Assembly (NCBI GenBank): GCA_028023455.1
Contig: JAQFVV010000009.1
Location: forward strand, 7,068,001 to 7,132,000
Direction: 5' to 3'
Source: Epiperipatus broadwayi
Taxonomy: Eukaryota; Animalia; Onychophora
Length of the DNA: 64,000 nt
Shown: in pieces, positions 14,885 through 64,000 of the stretch
Layout of the letters: each line of letters opens with the position of its first letter
How positions within the stretch are numbered: the first letter of the stretch is position 1
The notes under the pieces: generated by a model
What the model saw: only the letters and a program-made list of their open reading frames with translations
Databases searched by the model: none
What the model was told of the DNA's origin: nothing
Position numbers and translations under genes: made by a program

Positions 14885-15530
14885 GACTATTTTCTTTTTC
14901 GCATGTATGTGATCATGTGTGTCAGTTGTTTTAGAGGGAGTGGAGGGTGATATACTGAAACATTCAGTACACTGAATGAATAAGTTAATTGCATATGGGA
15001 GTGGAGGGTGATATACTGAAACATTCAGTACACTGAATGAATAAGTTAATTGCATATTCCCTTGGAAATAGGTTACATCTGTAAGTTGATCTCATCCCTC
15101 TTCTATTAATGTATGGACACGTAATTGTCTGATAATATGAATTAACGTAATATCTAAATGAGTATGACTATTATATGAAATCCAACAAGGATTTTGAGTT
15201 TTCCATCGTTGATTTTTCAATGAAATGGATGGTTGAATAGTTGGAAGGGTGAGAAGATTGAAGCCTGCCCATTAAAGTTTGAAGAATTACTATTTTAATA
15301 TAAGCCAGCACTGATTAGGTGTGGGAGATTATGATCTGGTCCAACTAATGAGTGCTGGTTCTGCATGAATTACCTATATTGGGGATCATCTATCTTTTTA
15401 GCATATATGTGCTCATGGGTGTCAGTTGTTTGACTTGGAGTGGAGAATGATAGACAGAAAAATCCTAAGTTCAAATTCCTCTATTTACTTATAAAGAAAA
15501 CATTCAGGACACTGAATGAATAGGTTAATT
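14885..15530 (+). mobile_element. R2 hammerhead-repeat copy (about 1.3 monomers)
   Basis: Homologous to 17451-18560; contains a 61-bp tandem duplication (14936-15057) and a mutated hammerhead. Confidence 0.85.
15333..15388 (+). ncRNA. Type I hammerhead, core mutated (CTAATGA, GAAT)
   Basis: gatct-ggt-CCAA-CTAATGA-GTGCTGGTTCTGCAT-GAAT-TACCTAT-A-TTGG-ggatc; probably inactive. Confidence 0.75.
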
Positions 15531-16775
15531 ATATATATGTATAGATATTTTGAACACATACATACATCAACCATAATAAAAGCTAATGAAGGTGGTTTTG
15601 ACATTTCTTCAGAAAACTATGTGATCATTTCAATTTATGTAGTTGCATTATGCAAGAGATTTAAGAGCAGATTTCAGGATTAAAAAAAAAAATTAGAATT
15701 GTCTGTCGCTTATAGAAAATTCCTAGTATTTAGTAATAGCAATCATTATATAACTAGTAGCATTGGGATATGGTTATGCAAAGCTGTTTGACAAATTCAT
15801 AAAGATACAAATCTTTTTTTTTTAAAAAAAGAGACAATAAGTATGCTGAATTTTGGAAATTAGCACCTGAAAAATACAAGGTTGTACAAGAGTGTACCCA
15901 AATGCACCCAAATGCTGCTCATATTGTTTTGTTTGCATCAACCTGTTTTTGTGAATCATCCTATTCTAAAATGAAATAAAGATATGAAGAGCATATTAAA
16001 AGTAGCATGTAGGAATTTATAAATAATCAACTGTTTGTCTCAATATCAAAAACACAGTAATTTCTAAATAAATTTGGACATACTTAGATTTATTTTTTTG
16101 CATTATCATATGAGGTATAATATACTTTGTTGTGGTCGCATAACATAGAAAACATTTAAGTGGCCTGAGGAAAAAAGATTGAGTATTGATGATTGAAGTA
16201 ATCTTCAATTATTTTAAACCTGTTGCTTTCTATTTTATTCTATAAAAGTATTTCATGTAAATTGCTCTAAAAAGTTAGAAAAGATTAAAACATCATACAT
16301 TACTGTTAATATTTTTAGTGACTCTATAAGACCATTTTGATAAATATTTTTCCAAATTTTGAATATATCATGGCTTTATGTTATTTTGCACTCATGGTTT
16401 AGTGCATCACAAATACCCTAAAATCAAATGCCTTTTCACTATCTATAAACCCTTTGTAAAATGACTATACATATTAGACAGTCATTTCTGTAACTTTACA
16501 TAAAACTTGAATGATAACTGCTTTTAAAACAGAATTTTCATTTGTTGGCTTGGGTTTAAAAGTCTTTATAGACTTTATTTAGAACTGATAGAAGAAGACT
16601 GTTTTCTTCTTCATCTCTCTTAAATATCAATATTGTATTTTTTCAGTCATTTGTCTATTTTTTAATTATTTAGACATTTAGGGAGTATTTGAACATAGAC
16701 TTTTAAGCTCCCTTCAGCTATCTCCTCCATGTTATATAACTGGAACATATGTTCACACACATGTGCAAAAGATAA

Positions 16776-16835
16776 ATGATCTCAAATATACATATTTCAT
16801 GCTGAACTAGATCTCATCAGTTGGTACAAATCATC
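16776..16835 (-). ncRNA. Type I hammerhead, core intact but stems I and II eroded
   Basis: Minus strand: CCAA-CTGATGA-GATCTAGTTCAGCAT-GAAA-TATGTAT-A-TTTG-agatcat. Confidence 0.7.
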
Positions 16836-17665
16836 ATTTCCCACACTATATAATCAGTGCTTAGTGTATATTAAGATAGCAAATCTTTAAATTTTCCTGT
16901 ACATGCTTCAGTCTTCTTCACTCTCCAACTTTTCAGCCATCTATATTAATGAAAATCTGATGATGGAATGCTCAAAGCTCTTGTTGATGTCAATATTATA
17001 CTCATCTCTATGTTGACTTTGTCACTCTGACCCTTCATATGTAGGACCATTAATATGCCTATTTAAATACATAGAAGGTGGATGTGTAGAATCCAGACTG
17101 CAAGTATAATTATATAGTGAACTTTAGATGTAATTAGAGGGGATTTGAACAAAGATTTTCCAAGTTCCCTTCAACCATCCACTACATCTTATATAACCAA
17201 CACACATGACCATATACATGTGAAAAAGATAAATGATCTCCAATGCTCAGTTTATATTAAGATAGCAAATCTTCAAGCTTTTATGGACAGGCTTCAATCC
17301 TCTCCACTCTTCAGCTATCCATATTGAAAATCTAATAGTGAAATGTTCAAAACCTTTGTTTATGCTACTATTATGGTTATACCCATGTTGACTTAAGTCA
17401 CTGATCCCTCATATATAGGTTCTTAATATGTCCATTTAAATACACAGAAGAGGTCCTACATATGAGGGATCAGAGTGACTTAAAGTCAACATGGGGTTGA
17501 CAACAATTTTGGCTTCAACAAGGGCTTTGAACATTCCATAATCAGATTTCAATAATATGGATGGCCGAAGAGCTGGATAGTGATGAAGATAGAAGCTGGT
17601 CCATTAATTTTGAAGAATTGCTATCTTAATATAAACTGCGCACTGATTATATATATATATCGGAG

Positions 17666-17725
17666 ATGATCTGAACTAACTGATGAGTGTTGGTTCAGCA
17701 TGAAATATGTATATTGGAAGATCAT
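17666..17725 (+). ncRNA. Type I hammerhead ribozyme, core intact; predicted cut after 17713
   Basis: atgatct-gaa-CTAA-CTGATGA(17680-17686)-GTGTTG-GTT-CAGCAT-GAAA-TATGTAT-A/TTGG-a-agatcat. Stems I-III all pair; pair 10.1-11.1 is G-U. Confidence 0.85.
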
Positions 17726-17929
17726 TTATCTTTTTCACTTGTATGTGGTCATGTGTGTCGGTTATATAAGATGGAGTGGATAGCTAAAGAGAGTCTGAAA
17801 ATCTGTGTTCAAATCCCAATTACATCTAAAGTTCAATATATACATTATACTGTATTCAATTATTACAAATTCAGCCTGAATTCTGCCCATCCTTCTGAGC
17901 ACTGATTATATATATGTGTGAGGGCGATG

Positions 17930-17988
17930 ATGATCTGGACCAACTGATGAGTGCTGGTTCAGAACGAAATACGTATATTGGAGATTAT
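17930..17988 (+). ncRNA. Type I hammerhead ribozyme, best-preserved copy; predicted cut after 17977
   Basis: atgatct-gga-CCAA-CTGATGA(17944-17950)-GTGCTG-GTT-CAGAAC-GAAA-TACGTAT-A/TTGG-agattat. 4+7-bp stem I with 3-nt bulge, 5/6-bp stem II with G10.1-C11.1, palindromic ATACGTAT stem-loop III, AUA triplet. Confidence 0.9.
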
Positions 17989-18382
17989 TTATCTTTTTCA
18001 TATGCATGTGATCATGTGTGTTGATCATATAAGATGGAATGGATAACTAAAGAGAGCTTGAAAGTCTATATCTAAAGTTCAGTATATACATTATACTTGT
18101 GTTTAAATATTACCAATTCAGCCTAAATTCTGCTAATTCCTCCTATTTGTATTTAAATGAATATATTAAGGTCCTACATACATAGGGGTCAGAGTGACTT
18201 AAAGTCAACATGGGTATGACAACAATATTGGCTTCAACTAGAGCTTTGAGCATTCTATCATTAGATTTCTCAATAGTATGGATGGCCACAGAATTGGAGA
18301 AGATTGAAGCCTGCATTAAAGTTTGAAGATTTGCTATCTTAATATAAACTGAGTATTGAATATATATGTGTGTGGGATATGA

Positions 18383-18437
18383 GGATCCGGACCAACTGAT
18401 GGGTGCTGGTCAGTACGAAATACATATATTGAAGATC
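18383..18437 (+). ncRNA. Type I hammerhead, A9 mutated (CTGATGG)
   Basis: ggatcc-gga-CCAA-CTGATGG-GTGCTGGTCAGTAC-GAAA-TACATAT-A-TTGA-agatct. Confidence 0.75.
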
Positions 18438-19744
18438 TTTTTCACATATATGTCGGTTATATAAGATGGAATGGATAGCTGAAGGGTGAACTTGAAAGTC
18501 TGTGTTCAAATTCCCTCTAATTACATCTAAAGTTCAGTATATACATTATACTTTTATTCAAATATTTAGATGCGCGTAATTTCAATCCTTTTTAAAAAAA
18601 ATATTGATTTTAAAATATCTATAAAGATTCACTTGCTTCTAGTAGCTTCTTCATTTTTCATTTATTTGTGTCTTAAAAACATGATGTCATATAATGATGA
18701 GATGGACTATTTTTTTTTTTTTCCATTTTTTATCACTATATAATTTTTTCACACATTTTATATCGATCCTGCTTTTTAATAGTATTTTCTTTTTGTTATA
18801 ATAATTGTTCATTCTATATCAAGATATATATTTTTTTGTTTTGAGACATTTTCTTTTATAGTTTTCTTCGTCATTTCACACTCACACATCTTTAGTATTA
18901 TCATTAATATTATCTGCATTATTTTATAGAATTCCAGATATTCAATTTAATTGACTGATTTAATAAAAAAATTTAGATATATATTGTCTTCTTTGCAGAA
19001 AATTTATCAATTAAATTGCTTTTTTGTTCCTATCTTATGAGTGTGTTCTCAGTTGCTTTATTATTTTATATATATTATTAAATTCTGAGCAATTTACAGT
19101 TTGTTGTTATGTTAAGACAATTTTTTAACTTCTTGTTTAAAGTCATTGCAGCATCTTTGATATTGTCTTTTGTATTATTAGCTCTTATTTGCTTAGCTTT
19201 GCATTTCCCTAGATCTTACTTTTCTTATGTTGAGTATATAAAGCATAGTATGTATTTTTACAAGTCATAATTTAATTCAACTCTAATACATCTTTATTTG
19301 GAGTCTTCCATTCTCTTGTTTATGATTTTTTTTTTTTCAATATTTTTTTTTTTGCAAAGTTCACAAAGGTGTTCTCTCTATATTTAAATTTTTCACAACA
19401 TTTTCATCTTAATTTTAATTTTCCATACTTTTAAAATGTTAAATCTGTTCAAAAACAATTTCTATTTTGCTCAGAATGAGTATTTATTGAGATAAAAAGT
19501 TGAAATATATGTGCTTATTTCATGTTCTTCATTTATATGAATAACATTAATCCAGCTTTCTTAATTTTTTATCCTTTACTAACTTTTCAGATTAAGAATA
19601 TGCATTTAATTTTTCCTCTTACTTTCCAGTGTATTTTCAACATTGTACTAATAGCAAAAATTCACTATATTTACCCAAAGCTATATATATATATATATGT
19701 AAAGAAATAAAAATAGAGATTACTAATTTTATTTTTGATGATAA

Positions 19745-26123: not shown

Positions 26124-26801
26124 TAAATATTTGAAAACCAGGGCACTTTACAAAACTGGAGCTTAATTGTAAATATAGGGGATTGTACTCAGACTTTCAA
26201 GCACCCTTCAAGTAACCACACTATCTCATACAACTGATGCTGGTTTAGCATGAAATACGAATATTGGAGATTATTTATCTTTTCTATATGTGTGTGGTCA
26301 TGTGTATCAGTTGTAAGAGATAGTGTGGATAGTTGAAGGTGCTTGAAAGTCTGAGTTCAAATCCCCTATATTTACAATTAACTTCCATGTTTGTAAAGAG
26401 GGCCTGGTTTTCAAATATTTACACATGAAGTTTGTATCCTGTATTTAAATGGATAAGGTACTACACATAAGGGATCAGAGTGACTTGAGGTCAACATGGG
26501 CATAGCAATAATATTGGCATCAGCATGGGATTTGGGCTTTCCATCATCAGATTTTCAATGATATGGATGGCTGAAGAGTTGGAGTTGAAGCCTGTCCATT
26601 AAAGTATGAAGATTTGTTATCTTAATATAAACTGAGTACTGATTATAAATATGTGTGGGAGATGATAATTTAGATCAACTGATGAGTGCTGGTTTAGCTT
26701 GAAATACATATATTGGAGATTATTTATCTTTTCTACATGTGTGTGATCATGTGTATCAGTTGTATGAGATAGTGTGGATAGTTGAAGGATGATTGAAAAT
26801 C
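26124..26801 (+). mobile_element. R2 insertion with 5' foldback and 14-bp TSD, in the last intron of the + gene
   Basis: tgatgtttaataga at 26110-26123 and 26802-26815. Arms 26124-26238 and 26306-26421 are complementary. One broken and one core-intact hammerhead lie about 445 nt apart. Confidence 0.9.
26663..26723 (+). ncRNA. Type I hammerhead, core intact; predicted cut after 26712
   Basis: ataattt-aga-TCAA-CTGATGA(26679-26685)-GTGCTG-GTT-TAGCTT-GAAA-TACATAT-A/TTGG-agattat. Stem II weakened by a U.U mismatch and G-U pairs. Confidence 0.75.
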
Positions 26802-27075
26802 TGATGTTTAATAGAGGTACAAATGGAACATTTCAAATTGAAATACAAAAAAGAGAATTTGAGTTTAAGTTATGTATCACTTTTCTTGCTATTTAATCAT
26901 AATGAATTGCATTATTTATACTTATTTTAATATATGTAAATGAGATACTTATTTTATATAGCGCGATGTTTTTGAATTGTTAAGATCCACAAAGCGCATG
27001 TGCATTAGTTTAAAAAGCTGATTATTAGTTTATTTTAATATAAAAAATATTGACTCAGTTTTTTTTTTTTTTTAG

Positions 27076-49329: not shown

Positions 49330-52300
49330 GATTTTATTCAGAAATCAAAGGTTAAGCACTTTCACAAAAACCCATCAAGTGGATCAAATGAAAATGTGAG
49401 AACAGACAAAGTAAAAAACTGGATAGAGATGTTTATGTTATGGTAGGGACAAATAATTTGTCAGAGCCATCAGAATAATGGGTGAGTACAAAGAATTGAT
49501 TAGTAGTTTGAGTAAGTTAAAGGAAGAGTAGGAGTAGTTGGATTACTACCAAGATTCAATAATAGGTATATGTTAGATAGATCGTTGTATAAACGAATTG
49601 AAAAAATTATGAGACAGAAATAATGTTTGTGGATAGTGGGATTTTTTTTATTAGTAAGAAGGATATACAGTAAAAATGGATTGTACTTAACAAAACAGGG
49701 AAGTGAAGCATTAGGGGGTTTTAGATGTAAGAAGTAAACAAAGAGTAGTTGATTCAGATGTAAATATAGATGTGTAAAAGGAATGCAGTCAGTAAAACTA
49801 ATGATAAACAAACTAATTATAAATATAATTGAGAAGAAAGAGTCAGAATTCATAAAAGAGCAGAAAGAAAGGATGAAGCTATAAAAATTGAATGTTGAAC
49901 ACGCAAGGTGATAGGATGCCAGAAAAGTGGCAGGAAATAAAGCAGTTAAAAAAAATGAAGGGCTAGAGATATTAGCAGTATAGGAAACACATCTAAGAGA
50001 AGAGCCTACACTGGAAGACTTGGTATGGCAGGGTATAAATAGACAAGAAAAAAGGAGTAGTGGTATAGGAGTTATATACTGTAAAGTGTCCAGAACATTT
50101 GTGGTTTGAGATAAGGTGAGGAAGACAAGAATGGATGGTGACTATAGTGTATATGGCCACTGGAGATACTCAGATTATAATGGAGTGGAACAGTAGCTAT
50201 AGAAATGCCTACTTAAGGATAGAGTTTTAAAAAAATGGGGAAGAAAATAATGGTTATAGGAGATATGAATGGGCATATTGAAGAAATTGATAATTTGGAT
50301 AACAAGAATGGACAGCTTTTGAAAAATTTTTGTCAGAGTATGAATTTGAGCATTGGAAATTTATTAAATATTTATGAGGCGAATACACATGATCTAGAAA
50401 TAATATATTTCACACAATAGATCATGTATTAGTTAGTAGAGAAAGAGGGATTAAATAAAGTACAGAAAATTAAAATGTTTGATAATGAAGAGAAAGTATG
50501 TAATAGTGATCATAATTTATAATAGAAATGGAAAATAATAAAAGTAGAAAGGATAGTAAAAGATGTGGATGGAGAATGAATGATAAGAATAAGTTAGAAT
50601 ATAAAAGTAGAAGAAACCATGGAAGAGTTTGTTGGGGATGAATATAAAGAATGGTGTGGTGAAGTAGAAAAAGTGGCAAACAGAAGAACAAAAGTAGTTG
50701 AAAAGTGAGAATTAAGTGTAAAATAGAGGGAAAAAGATTGCAGAGAATATAAATGTGCTATTAAGAACAAAGAAAGTGAAAAAGATGTTAATATTAAAAG
50801 GGAAAATTATTTAAATTAAAAAAAATTGGCTAAATAGATAATTATAGAGGGAGAATGAAATTAAACAGTAAATTATTGGAAAAATATTTGGGAATAAAAA
50901 ATTTTGGAAATATCTTAAAAGTAGGAATGTAAGGGAGAGAGAAATAGTATTTCTATATGTTGAGGAAAAAAGAGAAGCTCTAGAGAAGAATTAAAAACAA
51001 TCTTAAATAATTATGTAATGGATATAGAAAAGATATTAGATGTGAAGGACAGAGTGATAACAAGTGTAAAAGCATATATTAATGGAAATAGTAGTTTTGC
51101 GGAAAATGAATTTGAATGAGAGAGGGAGGAAATTGCGAAGTGGAAAGACAGGAACTTTAGATGGATGGGCAGCAGAGATATTGATGAAATTTGGGAAATA
51201 GGATAAAATTAAATCTATTATATTTTAATAAGATGGCACAGAAGATAGAATTTCCAGCTAGCTGGAATAATACAAGAGTAAGATTATTTTTTAAAGGAAA
51301 GGATCATAGAAAGATAAAATAATTATAAATGGATAACGGTAACGTCAGTGTTGTATAGTTTTCGTATATATGGTGGCAAAGTGAATGGAAGAAAATAATA
51401 TAGTGGGAGAAATGCAAGGAAGTTTTAGAACAGATAAGCATATGGGAGAAATGCAAGGAAGTTTTAGAACAGATAAGCATATAGGAGATAGTTTATTTGG
51501 AGTAACACAACTTATAGATATGAGTAGGAATATAGGTAGACAGTTATATATGGTCTTTATAGATAGAGAGAAGGCATATGATAGAATAAATATAAGTAGA
51601 TTATGGGGAAGTTTAGTAAATTTGGGAATGAATGAAGCTTTAGTAGATCTCATTAAGAGGTTGTATGAAAATAATTACTACATGTATCAATTGGGAAATA
51701 TAGAATCAAGAGATAAAAGGGGTGGTGGTGGTGGAACTAAGGCGAGGATGCCCTAGGCCAGATATTTTGTTTTTGTTATATTTGAGAGAAATGGAGAACA
51801 ATAGAAAGATTAGGAAGAGAGGTAGAGATACCATTAATAGATGGCAAGGGAGTGTATACATTAGCAGGTCCTTTATTTGCTAATGATATCTTGTGCACAG
51901 AAAGTAGGGAAGATATGGAAGTTATGCTAAAAATGTGTGCATGGGTGAGTAAAGAGATTGGGATTCAATTTAGTAAAAAAAAAAAATCAAAAGGAATAAT
52001 GATAATTGCTGAGGAAATAAAAGAGAGAATTTTTATAGAGGGATATAAAGTTAAATGTGGTGAATAGGTATAACTATCTGGGAATCATCTTAAGTAATCA
52101 GAGAAATTGCTTGGACGAATGGGAGAAAAAATTGATAAATGAAGCAAAGAAAACAAAGGGACTGATAAAGAAATTAAATTGTTTTTCAAATAGTAAATAT
52201 GATGTAGCAAGAATTGTATGGAAGGGAATGGCAGGGTTTAACTTATGGTAACAAAGTGTTAGAAAAGAGCCGTCACATTGCTTAGAAAAAATACAAAGAG

Positions 52301-61477: not shown

Positions 61478-63383
61478 CTAGGGAGAAAAAATGCCATATA
61501 TTAATAAAAATATATTATAAAAACTTTTCAAAGATTAAAACATTATAGCTTTTACAAACTTAATTACTTAAATAATCTAATTATGTTTCAGTTGAAATTA
61601 GCTAAATAAAAACATAACATTAAACACAATACAAATAAACATTTGAGACTTCTCATTTAAAGCCTAGGCATTATAAAATTAGTATTTCACATGTGCAAAT
61701 TAAATTATCTGTCTGGTCATAAATTCTAATATATAAAGATCGTTGCTTATTATTTGTTATTCTACTAAAATAATTTATATAAAGAAGAAAAATTTGTTCC
61801 AAAGTTATCATTACTTAAATTGTGGAATGAAAAGCATTTGATATATTGCTAAATATTATTTTATATATTACACATATATAATTAATTAACATCTGCAAAT
61901 GTATACAAATAAGGAGAAATGCTTTCAACTTTCTAATTGCAGTGGTATAAACATTCTTTATTTCAATCATTATAGATTTAGGAAAAAACTTACAAATTCC
62001 TCTGTAGGATATATGTAATTAGAATTAACAATTCTCACGAGCTGCCTAAAGCATCTTCTATCCAAACATAATGATCTTGTATAACAACAAAAATATAACC
62101 AACTTAATTTTAAAACATCAATAATCATCACTAAATCATAAACAAGGCAGTCACATAAAATACATTTCCTTACTCGAAGGTTATATAATAAATATTTAAA
62201 TATAAAATAATTAACAGCACCTATATAAAAAATATGCAAATCAACTGAATTTATTCAATCTTTCAATCACAGTTCTGCAAACATTCTTTTACTCTGATTG
62301 CTATACTATATTAAAAAACTGATCAATATATAGATGCTTATGGTTATTTATATGTATATATATTTAGATGGTGTGTATTTATTATATAAAGTTTAGATAA
62401 TAAAAGGATTATATGACAGTCCTATCTCTTCTATTGTTTGTTTAGCTGTATGGAAAATGGCTGATTTATTGATAACTGCTGCATTGATTATTGATACATA
62501 TATATTTATCTTATATAGAAAGAATGTTATTAGAGGGGATTGAACAGAATTAGAAGCTCCCTTCCGCTTTCCACTCCAACTTATATAACTGATATACATG
62601 TATATACATTATACTTGTAATCAAATAGAAAGATTATTATATTTATATAAGAGATAGGTGATGTACAATGACAAAACTTGTTGATCTAAAATACATGCAT
62701 GCTGCAGAGCAATTAATTGTTTTTTCCACACATTTCAAGGAGTTATGATTCACTATGATTAACCAATTAATTAATTTTATTTACATATATTTATAGGAAT
62801 CGTTAGTTGTTTAATTACTTTAGATTTGTATTTGTTAAATATGATCTAAATAAATAAGCTAAAGGTAGATTATCAATGCTTTAAAATGATCATAGATCAA
62901 TAAATGTTAAATTTTTTGCATAGCATAGCAATCAAAATAAAGAATGTTTGCAGAATTATGATTGTTGAAGAAGTTTAATCAAATCAATTTATTTATATAT
63001 ATATCTATAAATATTACTAAAAATTATTCTTTAAGAATACTGATATAGATGTTCTCAGATTAGATAAATATCTAAATATAATGTAAGCTATCAGAGTAAA
63101 AAATTCAATCCTGATGATAAAATACTGTTAATGGAAAAAAATATTAAAAAAAGAAGAGCAAATAATAATGAGATTGAATAATTCTCTTCATAATCTACAA
63201 TAGCAATACAGATATAAAGGAAATATAAATAAAAATTATTCAGGATTCAAATATGTATAACATATAGCATATAGAATAAATAAAAAGAAACTACTTAGTA
63301 TATTATGAATCACGTAATCAATCATTCATTGACATTATAGTGTGAAGTTTTCAAAGCTAAGAGATTTTATTATAATCATATGT

Positions 63384-64000
63384 AATATATAGGGTATATG
63401 AGCACAGACTTTCACATGATCGACCACTCTCCACACTATCTCATAACACATACATTTGAACACATATATGTTGAAAAGGTAAATATCATCAGTTGGTCGA
63501 GATACGTATATTGGTGATTATTTTTTCAACATATATGTGTTCAAGTGTATCAGTGTTATGAGATAGTGTAGAGAGTGGTGGATCATGTGAAAGTCTGTGC
63601 TCATATACTCTATATATTCCATATATAGACACAGGTATATAATAAGCCTGTGTGTTCTTTGCCCATCCCTTGTATATGTATTAAATGTATTATGCCCTGT
63701 ACATGAGGGGTCAGATTGACATTAGATCAACATGGGTGTGACAAGAATCTCAACCTTAGGGTGGCCTTCGAGCATTCCATCGTCAGATTTTCAATTGGAT
63801 GAACGGTTGAAGAGTTGGAGTAGATTGAAGCCTGTCCATTAAAGTATGAGGTTTGGCTATCTTAATATATATCTGAGCACTTATAGCATATATGTGTAGA
63901 GATGGTAATCTGGACCAACTGATGATTGCTGGTTTAGCATGAAATACGTATGTTGGTGCTATCTTTTCAACATATATGTGTTCAAGTGTATCAGTGTTAT
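63384..64000 (+). mobile_element. R2 insertion with 5' foldback, in a DNAJC3 intron (antisense); continues past the window end
   Basis: Arms 63384-63477 and 63523-63618 are complementary; the downstream monomer is homologous to 17451-17720. Confidence 0.9.
63905..63960 (+). ncRNA. Type I hammerhead, probably inactive (N17=G, 10.1=T)
   Basis: gtaatct-gga-CCAA-CTGATGA(63919-63925)-TTGCTGGTTTAGCAT-GAAA-TACGTAT-G-TTGG. Confidence 0.75.

Follow-up and report, generated by a model that had tools for sequence, protein, structure and literature searches.

The window analysed here, a stretch of 64,000 nucleotides (nt) from the onychophoran Epiperipatus broadwayi (contig JAQFVV010000009.1, positions 7,068,001 to 7,132,000), contains several copies of a dispersed repeat whose 479-nt unit carries one hammerhead ribozyme motif. 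This repeat is most probably an animal retrozyme family of the non-long-terminal-repeat (non-LTR) type, mobilised by Penelope-like elements (PLEs). The family is real and new, but of a published kind, and its value lies in the clean Penelope signature borne by a retrozyme and not in the ribozyme itself. Small circular RNAs can arise in animals by way of hammerhead retrozymes, a route recognised recently, and the mobility of these elements has been argued from their co-occurrence with PLEs and from sequence similarity. The family described here, a very high-copy case, supports Penelope mobilisation through the anatomy of its insertions, in which arms joined head to head, two fixed ends and a one-sided tail make up the full Penelope signature; target-site duplications (TSDs) flank the pairs. 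It also constitutes a large natural data set for the study of start sites and template switches.

A preliminary description of this DNA, made from its letters alone, had already proposed a dispersed retrozyme family built of tandem ribozyme-bearing monomers. The high copy number, the dispersion, the non-coding nature and the single type I hammerhead per unit all stand. The tandem architecture and the significance attached to the size of the unit do not, and the copies are old.

Anatomy of the insertions

The locus that had been taken for a tandem array of monomers is one old head-to-head double insertion of Penelope type. It occupies positions 16675-18566, and its two 5'-truncated arms are longer than one unit and have defined 3' ends. 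BLAST against the family consensus followed by arm chaining places the left arm on the minus strand at 16675-17453, where it runs from consensus 230 to 455, from 48/49 to 479 and from 1 to 157. The right arm lies on the plus strand at 17451-18566 and runs from consensus 260 to 479, 1 to 233, 446 to 479, 1 to 479 (a full unit, at 17930-18382) and 3 to 201. The arms meet at an inversion point located by the same procedure at 17434-17453. The outer end of the left arm is the short terminus of the family (near consensus 160, reading ...CTAAATG here), and that of the right arm is the long terminus with its tail of about 43 nt. A candidate 8-nt TSD, TATTTAGA, is found at 16667-16674 on the left and at 18563-18570 on the right, where it overlaps the last 4 nt of the element; taken alone, it is weak evidence in such AT-rich DNA. 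Compared with each other, the two arms share 77-80% identity, and each matches the consensus at 83-88%; their mutual identity fits a single snap-back complementary DNA (cDNA) and two separate cDNAs alike, between which it cannot distinguish.

The internal organisation of the arms is irregular as well. In the left arm, consensus ~455 is joined to 48/49 at 17237-17244 (minus strand), a unit junction which lacks the catalytic half of the hammerhead and resumes at the base that directly follows the predicted cut. The distance between ribozyme motifs had been given as 430-451 nt. This is roughly right for the motifs at 17930 and 18382 (452 nt) and for those at 26220 and 26665 (about 445 nt), but not for those at 17666 and 17930, which are only 264 nt apart because consensus 234-445 (212 nt) is deleted in that unit.

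The insertion signature was compared over 60 loci fetched from the genome (designated by L-numbers), picked as the best full-length matches, together with the window. Arm ends were set by BLAST; a permissive local alignment over-extended into the AT-rich flanks and was discarded. In this sample, 47 arm pairs are arranged head to head and none tail to tail. The ends of high-scoring segment pairs (HSPs) cluster at consensus 141-220 (101 HSPs), more precisely at about 146-165 and 196-208, and the starts are spread along the unit. Alignment of the termini gives two discrete 3' ends, ...CTAATTA (consensus ~161-163) and ...AAATATTA (~203-207), about 43 nt apart; counted downstream from the predicted cut, they lie at some 114 and 157 nt. 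One short end is combined with one long end in 23 of the 29 pairs that could be classified (expected share 0.49, p = 8e-4). The longest direct word common to both flanks has a mean length of 8.2 nt, against 6.5 ± 0.34 nt in mismatched flanks, and clear TSDs of 13-16 nt are present at L005, L007 and L038. The median arm measures 662 nt, and the longest reaches 1,293 nt (2.7 units).

That such copies would be ordinary satellite DNA spread by unequal crossing-over, in the manner of the long newt satellite 2 arrays, is hardly credible. Head-to-tail unit junctions do exist, and one contig from a public run contains a 450-nt 'goes back' joint. However, the sampled copies are dispersed over many contigs in arms of at most 2.7 units, their 5' ends vary and their 3' ends are fixed, they have inverted partners, and duplications flank them.

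Mobilisation by PLEs would best account for this combination. Published PLE insertions display 5' truncation, partial tandems, an adjacent inverted and 5'-truncated copy and a tail of 30-40 bp often present at one end only, and PLEs carry a hammerhead in their pseudo-LTR (PMC8557442). The family shares with them the 5' truncation, the partial tandems, the inverted 5'-truncated neighbour, the one-ended tail, start sites at a fixed distance and a very short stem III. It differs by the absence of an open reading frame (ORF) for reverse transcriptase (RT) or endonuclease (EN) and by its tail, which measures about 43 nt against 30-40 bp. In vitro, the PLE protein of Anolis cleaves AT-rich targets on both DNA strands and extends both; it begins reverse transcription within the RNA, at two neighbouring sites downstream of the hammerhead (PMC11167929), and these two start sites explain the PLE tail. 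The corresponding sites of the family differ in position, ~114 and ~157 nt past the cut against ~85-92 nt in Anolis (stem-loop 111-118 bp into the ORF, cut 26 bp in).

The same ends bear on another scenario, in which a tRNA-derived short interspersed element (SINE), transcribed by RNA polymerase III (Pol III) as Schistosoma Sm-alpha is, would have been moved by a long interspersed element (LINE) with the hammerhead as a passenger. We consider it very improbable. It could invoke a B-box-like GAGTTCAAATCC (9 of 11 positions by eye) with an A-box-like ...GGAGTGG about 38 nt upstream, as well as a weak cloverleaf at consensus 90-161 (window ~18020-18080, partly deleted), proposed by ARAGORN at a relaxed threshold only and ending at the short 3' terminus (~161). 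At the normal threshold, however, ARAGORN finds nothing in the window copies, and at the relaxed one it also drew an obviously spurious tRNA over the hammerhead. RF00005, searched at a cut-off as loose as E <= 10 in eight of the best loci, has no match at the family position. The element lacks a poly(A) or LINE-type tail, and head-to-head pairs with two-site ends are the signature of PLEs, not of LINEs. A tRNA-like Pol III head, seen by relaxed ARAGORN only and without RF00005 support, was not adopted. Sm-alpha has a documented Pol III promoter, and newt satellite 2 and Dolichopoda pDo500 form long tandem satellites. The family resembles all three as a non-coding repeat of a few hundred nt with a type I hammerhead and a weak stem III, but its A and B boxes are only look-alikes of a promoter such as that of Sm-alpha, and its copies are dispersed PLE-type insertions, not long tandem satellites like those of newt satellite 2 or pDo500.

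The 5' ends of the arms fall within consensus 1-60, which represents 12.5% of the unit, in 27 of 94 cases against 11.8 expected (p = 2e-5), and their frequency falls after ~50. A recurrent junction links consensus ~8-11 to ~29 at an inverted microhomology of 8/10 nt, between the 5' strand of stem I and the reverse complement of the 3' strand of stem II. Junctions starting at consensus 46-50 are found at window position 17244 and in L023, L053, L010 and L055. Head-to-head inversion points located inside the hammerhead are seen, for instance, at L003:1496-1501, L007:1499-1501, L063:1944-1950 and window 63484-63499. Ends and junctions centred on the hammerhead may have arisen where the template had been cleaved, where copying paused at the folded motif, or through fold-back priming. 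Reading the 5' ends as fossils of the cleavage site itself was not retained as more than suggestive, breakpoints being enriched over all of consensus 1-50 and not just at the cut site. The arms of L002, L025, L052, L053 and L064 begin at the TATATATGTGTG stretch (near consensus 456-465), which lies a short way upstream of the hammerhead, and long (TA)n runs come before them; these could be an expansion of the element's own TA-rich segment or the result of insertion into (TA)n targets.

The hammerhead motif

An alignment of 79 family copies (A1) was used to build a covariance model (R1) with the secondary structure proposed in the preliminary description. In the 64-kb window, R1 recovers exactly the eight hammerhead positions reported there, at 41.8-84 bits, and its next-best match reaches 15.8 bits. 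A 26-nt core pattern allowing up to three mismatches gives four matches in the window where none is expected. The split motif reported at 63487 also exists and corresponds to an inverted junction lying within a hammerhead. All listed sites carry ATGATCT-GGA-CCAA-CUGAUGA-stem II-GAAA-UACGUAUA-UUGG-AGAUCAU, mutated to varying degree. The consensus proposed earlier is correct as the ancestral sequence and is present in 59 exact genomic copies. Two core CpGs account by deamination for the commonest core variants (CATGAAA or CACAAAA, and ACAT or ATGT); both are deaminated in most copies, and the ancestral sequence is consequently CAGCACGAAAUACGUAU, as the 59 exact copies confirm. The predicted helices agree with those first drawn, namely a stem I of 4+7 bp with a GGA bulge, a stem II of 6 bp and a stem III of 2 bp: over the 79 copies, the 19 proposed pairs are paired in 90.1% of cells, whereas shifting the partners by 1-3 columns leaves 30-43%.

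The ancestral 59-mer possesses all invariant positions of the hammerhead core, the UA cleavage dinucleotide and three helices arranged in type I topology, with the open end at stem I. Stems I and II are both present in its minimum-energy fold (-14.9 kcal/mol). Stem III consists only of A-U/U-A closed by ACGU, and the segment AUACGUAU to which it belongs is a perfect palindrome, predicted to form an 8-bp intermolecular duplex of -8.5 kcal/mol. Such a minimal palindromic stem III points to dimer-dependent cleavage as in the axolotl retrozyme hammerheads, where motifs with a palindromic stem III are reported to need dimers for efficient cleavage (PMC7229834); the short stem III of both would favour cleavage in dimeric form. 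Judged from this predicted structure, the family hammerhead is probably of the minimal, dimer-type kind. Atypical minimal type I hammerheads are known from PLEs and Terminons (PMC7229834), and those of PLEs are ascribed to Cervera and de la Peña (2014) as cited in PMC8557442 and PMC11167929.

The best-preserved hammerhead of the window lies at 17930-17988 on the plus strand (R1 84 bits). It has kept the CUGAUGA, GAAA and UA boxes and departs from the 42-nt core by one mismatch, with one mismatch in stem II and one G-U pair in stem I. Its predicted cut falls between 17977 and 17978, after AUA and before UUGG. The second hammerhead with an intact core, at 17666-17725 on the same strand (74.5 bits), has C11.1 replaced by U and two G-U pairs in stem II, and its cut is predicted before 17714. 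These are the only two window copies to keep a complete core, the remaining ones having core or stem mutations; among sampled copies, both core boxes are kept in 21 of 76.

Folded as a 479-nt circle, the consensus reaches -142.5 kcal/mol against -104.8 ± 6.4 kcal/mol for mononucleotide shuffles (z = -5.9). The predicted circular fold is 73% paired, and stem I extends into a helix of about 70 bp. Animal non-LTR retrozymes are composed of low-GC non-coding units of 150-450 bp with type I hammerheads, have TSDs of more than 4 bp, are found together with PLEs and give rise on expression to highly self-paired circles of 170-400 nt (PMC7229834). The family resembles those of Mytilus, Acropora and the axolotl (Rtz_331/353; Cervera and de la Peña 2020, PMC7229834) by its single type I hammerhead per non-coding low-GC unit, its head-to-tail units, its thousands of copies, its TSDs, its presence alongside PLEs and the self-paired circle predicted here. 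It differs from them by its unit of ~479 nt against 150-450 bp and, in the sampled copies, by short arms (at most 2.7 units) in head-to-head pairs and not in long arrays. The monomer had been estimated at ~450 nt and placed at the long end of known sizes; at ~479 nt it slightly exceeds the range of PMC7229834 but falls within the 51-972 bp reported in a 2026 preprint for retrozyme units, there derived from PLE pseudo-LTRs (bioRxiv 10.64898/2026.07.22.740005), so that its size is unremarkable.

Several results weigh against a PLE-mobilised retrozyme. An Rfam scan of the window gives no match at the gathering threshold, and no hammerhead appears among the matches obtained at E <= 10 over 4 kb. 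Presented with a 111-nt query of the best copy, RF00163 (Hammerhead_1) returns 14.2 bits against a gathering score of 34. The CUGAUGA...GAAA...UH core and the type I topology fit the model, and core and stem I align to it; the low score is mainly due to stem III, which is limited to 2 bp, A-U/U-A, where the model has a 4-bp GC-rich stem. The minimum-energy fold of the best window copy is not the hammerhead but a competing helix between the 5' strand of stem I and the 3' strand of stem II. Pairing over the 79 copies (90.1%) compares with 89.6 ± 0.2% in column shuffles, revealing no clear covariation beyond neutral decay. The covariation score of 0.133 against 0.122 ± 0.005 in shuffles is reached by 11 of 500 of them, and neutral decay of one master would give the same; pairs with double changes number 7 against 5.0 ± 1.6. 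The hammerhead core is not more conserved than its flanks or other parts of the unit. Insertion in vitro by the published PLE system does not require hammerhead cleavage (PMC11167929). An autonomous PLE with the same module from hammerhead to tail was not identified in the fetched loci and the window, no search having been made at PLE loci. The share of arms exceeding one unit (80%) is biased upward because the loci were chosen as the best full-length matches.

Lack of clear covariation and a core conserved no better than its flanks were the two genomic observations that the preliminary description had named as refuting its reading, and both were made. They are nevertheless expected for neutrally decaying copies of one master and thus do not refute an ancestral ribozyme. 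A more radical explanation is that the motif never worked as a ribozyme and is a conserved structured module of a short PLE-dependent element that makes no circular RNA; the Penelope protein might, for example, bind to it or be stalled by it as a roadblock. The score below the Rfam threshold, the lack of clear covariation, the 2-bp stem III and the competing helix in the window copy are all in its favour, as are the dispensability of cleavage in vitro, the lack of Anolis reads ending at the cut site (PMC11167929) and the arm 5' ends, which are spread over the whole motif (the 27 of 94 in consensus 1-60, p = 2e-5) instead of being sharp at the cut. We regard it as unlikely all the same: no invariant core position is missing from the ancestral sequence, which also has the UA dinucleotide and the three helices, minimal hammerheads with a palindromic stem III are reported from axolotl retrozymes to need dimers for efficient cleavage (PMC7229834), and the PLE hammerhead cleaved when assisted by the protein (PMC11167929).

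For a functional retrozyme mobilised by PLEs, the following pathway can be proposed. Multimeric transcripts would be cut by the hammerhead after AUA, probably as a dimer through the 8-bp intermolecular stem III, and a host RNA ligase would then close the resulting 479-nt monomers into rod-like circles; ligation by RtcB has been shown for other retrozymes (PMC7229834). The PLE protein would cut both strands of an AT-rich target, and reverse transcription would start internally at two fixed sites and continue beyond the length of one unit, by going round the circle or by following a multimer. Two cDNAs would finally be joined head to head.

A bolder proposal, which we advance as a tentative possibility, is that the genomic copies may be the fossil record of a Penelope RT copying circular (or multimeric) hammerhead RNA. 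It derives from arms exceeding the unit, from two apparent internal starts of reverse transcription giving a one-sided 43-nt tail and from the concentration of cDNA ends and inversions in the hammerhead, the recurrent junction at the microhomology included. If true, this would constitute direct structural evidence on the mobilisation of animal retrozymes, drawn from a retrozyme itself and not from a PLE, and would suggest that the fold of the ribozyme shapes the inverted architecture of its own insertions.

Copy number, age and partner elements

The assembly comprises 5.6 Gb in 18,588 contigs, and the window has a GC content of 26%. With up to two mismatches, the 42-nt core has 3,387 + 3,289 = 6,676 matches in the genome, of which 59 are exact, against 0 for a reversed-pattern control. 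The monomer at 17930-18382 used as query gave 8,161 first-look candidates, all 74-84% identical to it, and a copy nearer the consensus gave 6,880. In the sample, only 5 of the 134 recognisable cores lie within two mismatches. A rough extrapolation from these figures, which is a biased estimate and not a count, suggests about 10^5 units, the family size being of the order of 10^4-10^5. Family matches fall in three blocks of contig numbers (C1..., C6197..., C12393...). The assembly may hold more than one haplotype or assembly set, and copies per haploid genome could be one half or one third of the counts.

The majority consensus derived from 79 near-full-length copies is 479 nt long, with 36% GC and no CpG left. 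Copies are 71-90% identical to it (median 86%), and the ratio of exact cores to cores with up to two mismatches gives no excess of intact copies, hence no young subfamily is seen. The window copies are old and CpG-decayed, and most likely inactive. Four small public runs made of contigs only, and not on record as RNA, contain family contigs by the thousand, in which the majority letters bring back the stems of the consensus (17963 A>C, 17690 T>C, 17986 T>C); having no read starts, ends or strand, they bear neither on expression nor on circles. The core sequence was not found in the text of the literature searched and is species-specific.

The absence of coding capacity noted earlier is confirmed: the double-insertion locus has no ORF of at least 110 amino acids, and the consensus has none on the sense strand. 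The family arms contain no RT or EN ORF, and the element is therefore non-autonomous. On the antisense strand of the consensus, a stop-free stretch of 112 codons extends from consensus 297 to 153 through the unit junction and spans the hammerhead. Individual copies keep only a median of 57 codons of this frame, which was rejected as coding and is probably due to chance.

PLEs are abundant in this genome. A search with PF01541 (GIY-YIG) produced 10,243 first-look candidates, with 150/150 scored above the cut-off, and GIY-YIG/PLE open frames reach 901 amino acids, many of them in inverted pairs. This abundance, together with the heavy 5' truncation of PLE insertions and the presence of a hammerhead in their pseudo-LTR (PMC8557442), would be compatible with copies that are merely the 5'-truncated ends or solo pseudo-LTRs of an autonomous PLE and form no family of their own. 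Such an origin appears improbable, however, as the arms re-enter the 479-nt unit upstream of the hammerhead, extend to 2.7 units at most and in no case run into an ORF, the consensus lacks a sense open frame, and the ORFs near the arms are devoid of GIY-YIG, the sole RT match being a fragment beside an interrupted arm. A separate retrozyme family using the PLE machinery remains our preferred reading.

In the fetched loci and the window, ORFs yielded RVT_1 and Exo_endo_phos fragments only and no GIY-YIG. These retroelement fragments are located at window 51385-51756 (plus strand), L027:2654-3190 (plus strand) and L025:477-1097 (minus strand), with RVT_1 scores of 25.5 and 43.7 bits and one weak Exo_endo_phos match. 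The RT fragment of L027 is situated 70 nt behind an interrupted family arm.

Other copies in the window and related observations

The double insertion at 16675-18566 contains two further hammerheads. The one that follows the full unit of the right arm, at 18382-18439 on the plus strand (R1 62.9 bits), is decayed: its core reads CUGAUGG, loop 2 has lost 1 nt, and stem I contains UUGA. That of the left arm, at 16776-16834 on the minus strand (64.2 bits), has kept its core boxes and has a broken stem II (GAUCUA/CAGCAU).

Three other copies were delineated in the window. A separate 5'-truncated copy at 15145-15444 on the plus strand runs from consensus 286 to 114 and includes a decayed hammerhead at 15331-15389 (66.4 bits) with CUAAUGA and GAAU boxes. 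A head-to-head pair at 26159-26811 is formed by a minus arm (26159-26234) and a plus arm (26231-26811), and contains a partly deleted hammerhead at 26220-26274 (41.8 bits) and another one at 26665-26723 (73.4 bits). A second head-to-head pair, close to the end of the window at 63380-63991, consists of a minus arm (63380-63484) and a plus arm (63499-63991) whose inversion point is inside a hammerhead; a further hammerhead lies at 63905-63963 (55 bits).

The family has consequences for genome annotation, in that Rfam thresholds miss the dimer-type motif entirely and palindromic junctions mimic the hairpins of microRNAs (miRNAs). Sub-threshold Rfam matches to miRNA precursors, scoring up to 91 bits, occur at window 17386-17492, L028:2039-2254, L039:2030-2151 and L042:3085-3220. 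Those of the window, L028 and L039 are long palindromes originating from head-to-head insertion and represent an annotation trap. A distinct set of hammerheads, with a core CUGAAGAG ... GAAAC and a GC-rich stem II, passes RF00163 at 35-40 bits (L031:1500-1545 and, on other contigs, about 1500-1545 in L032-L034), which indicates that several unrelated hammerhead families coexist in this genome.

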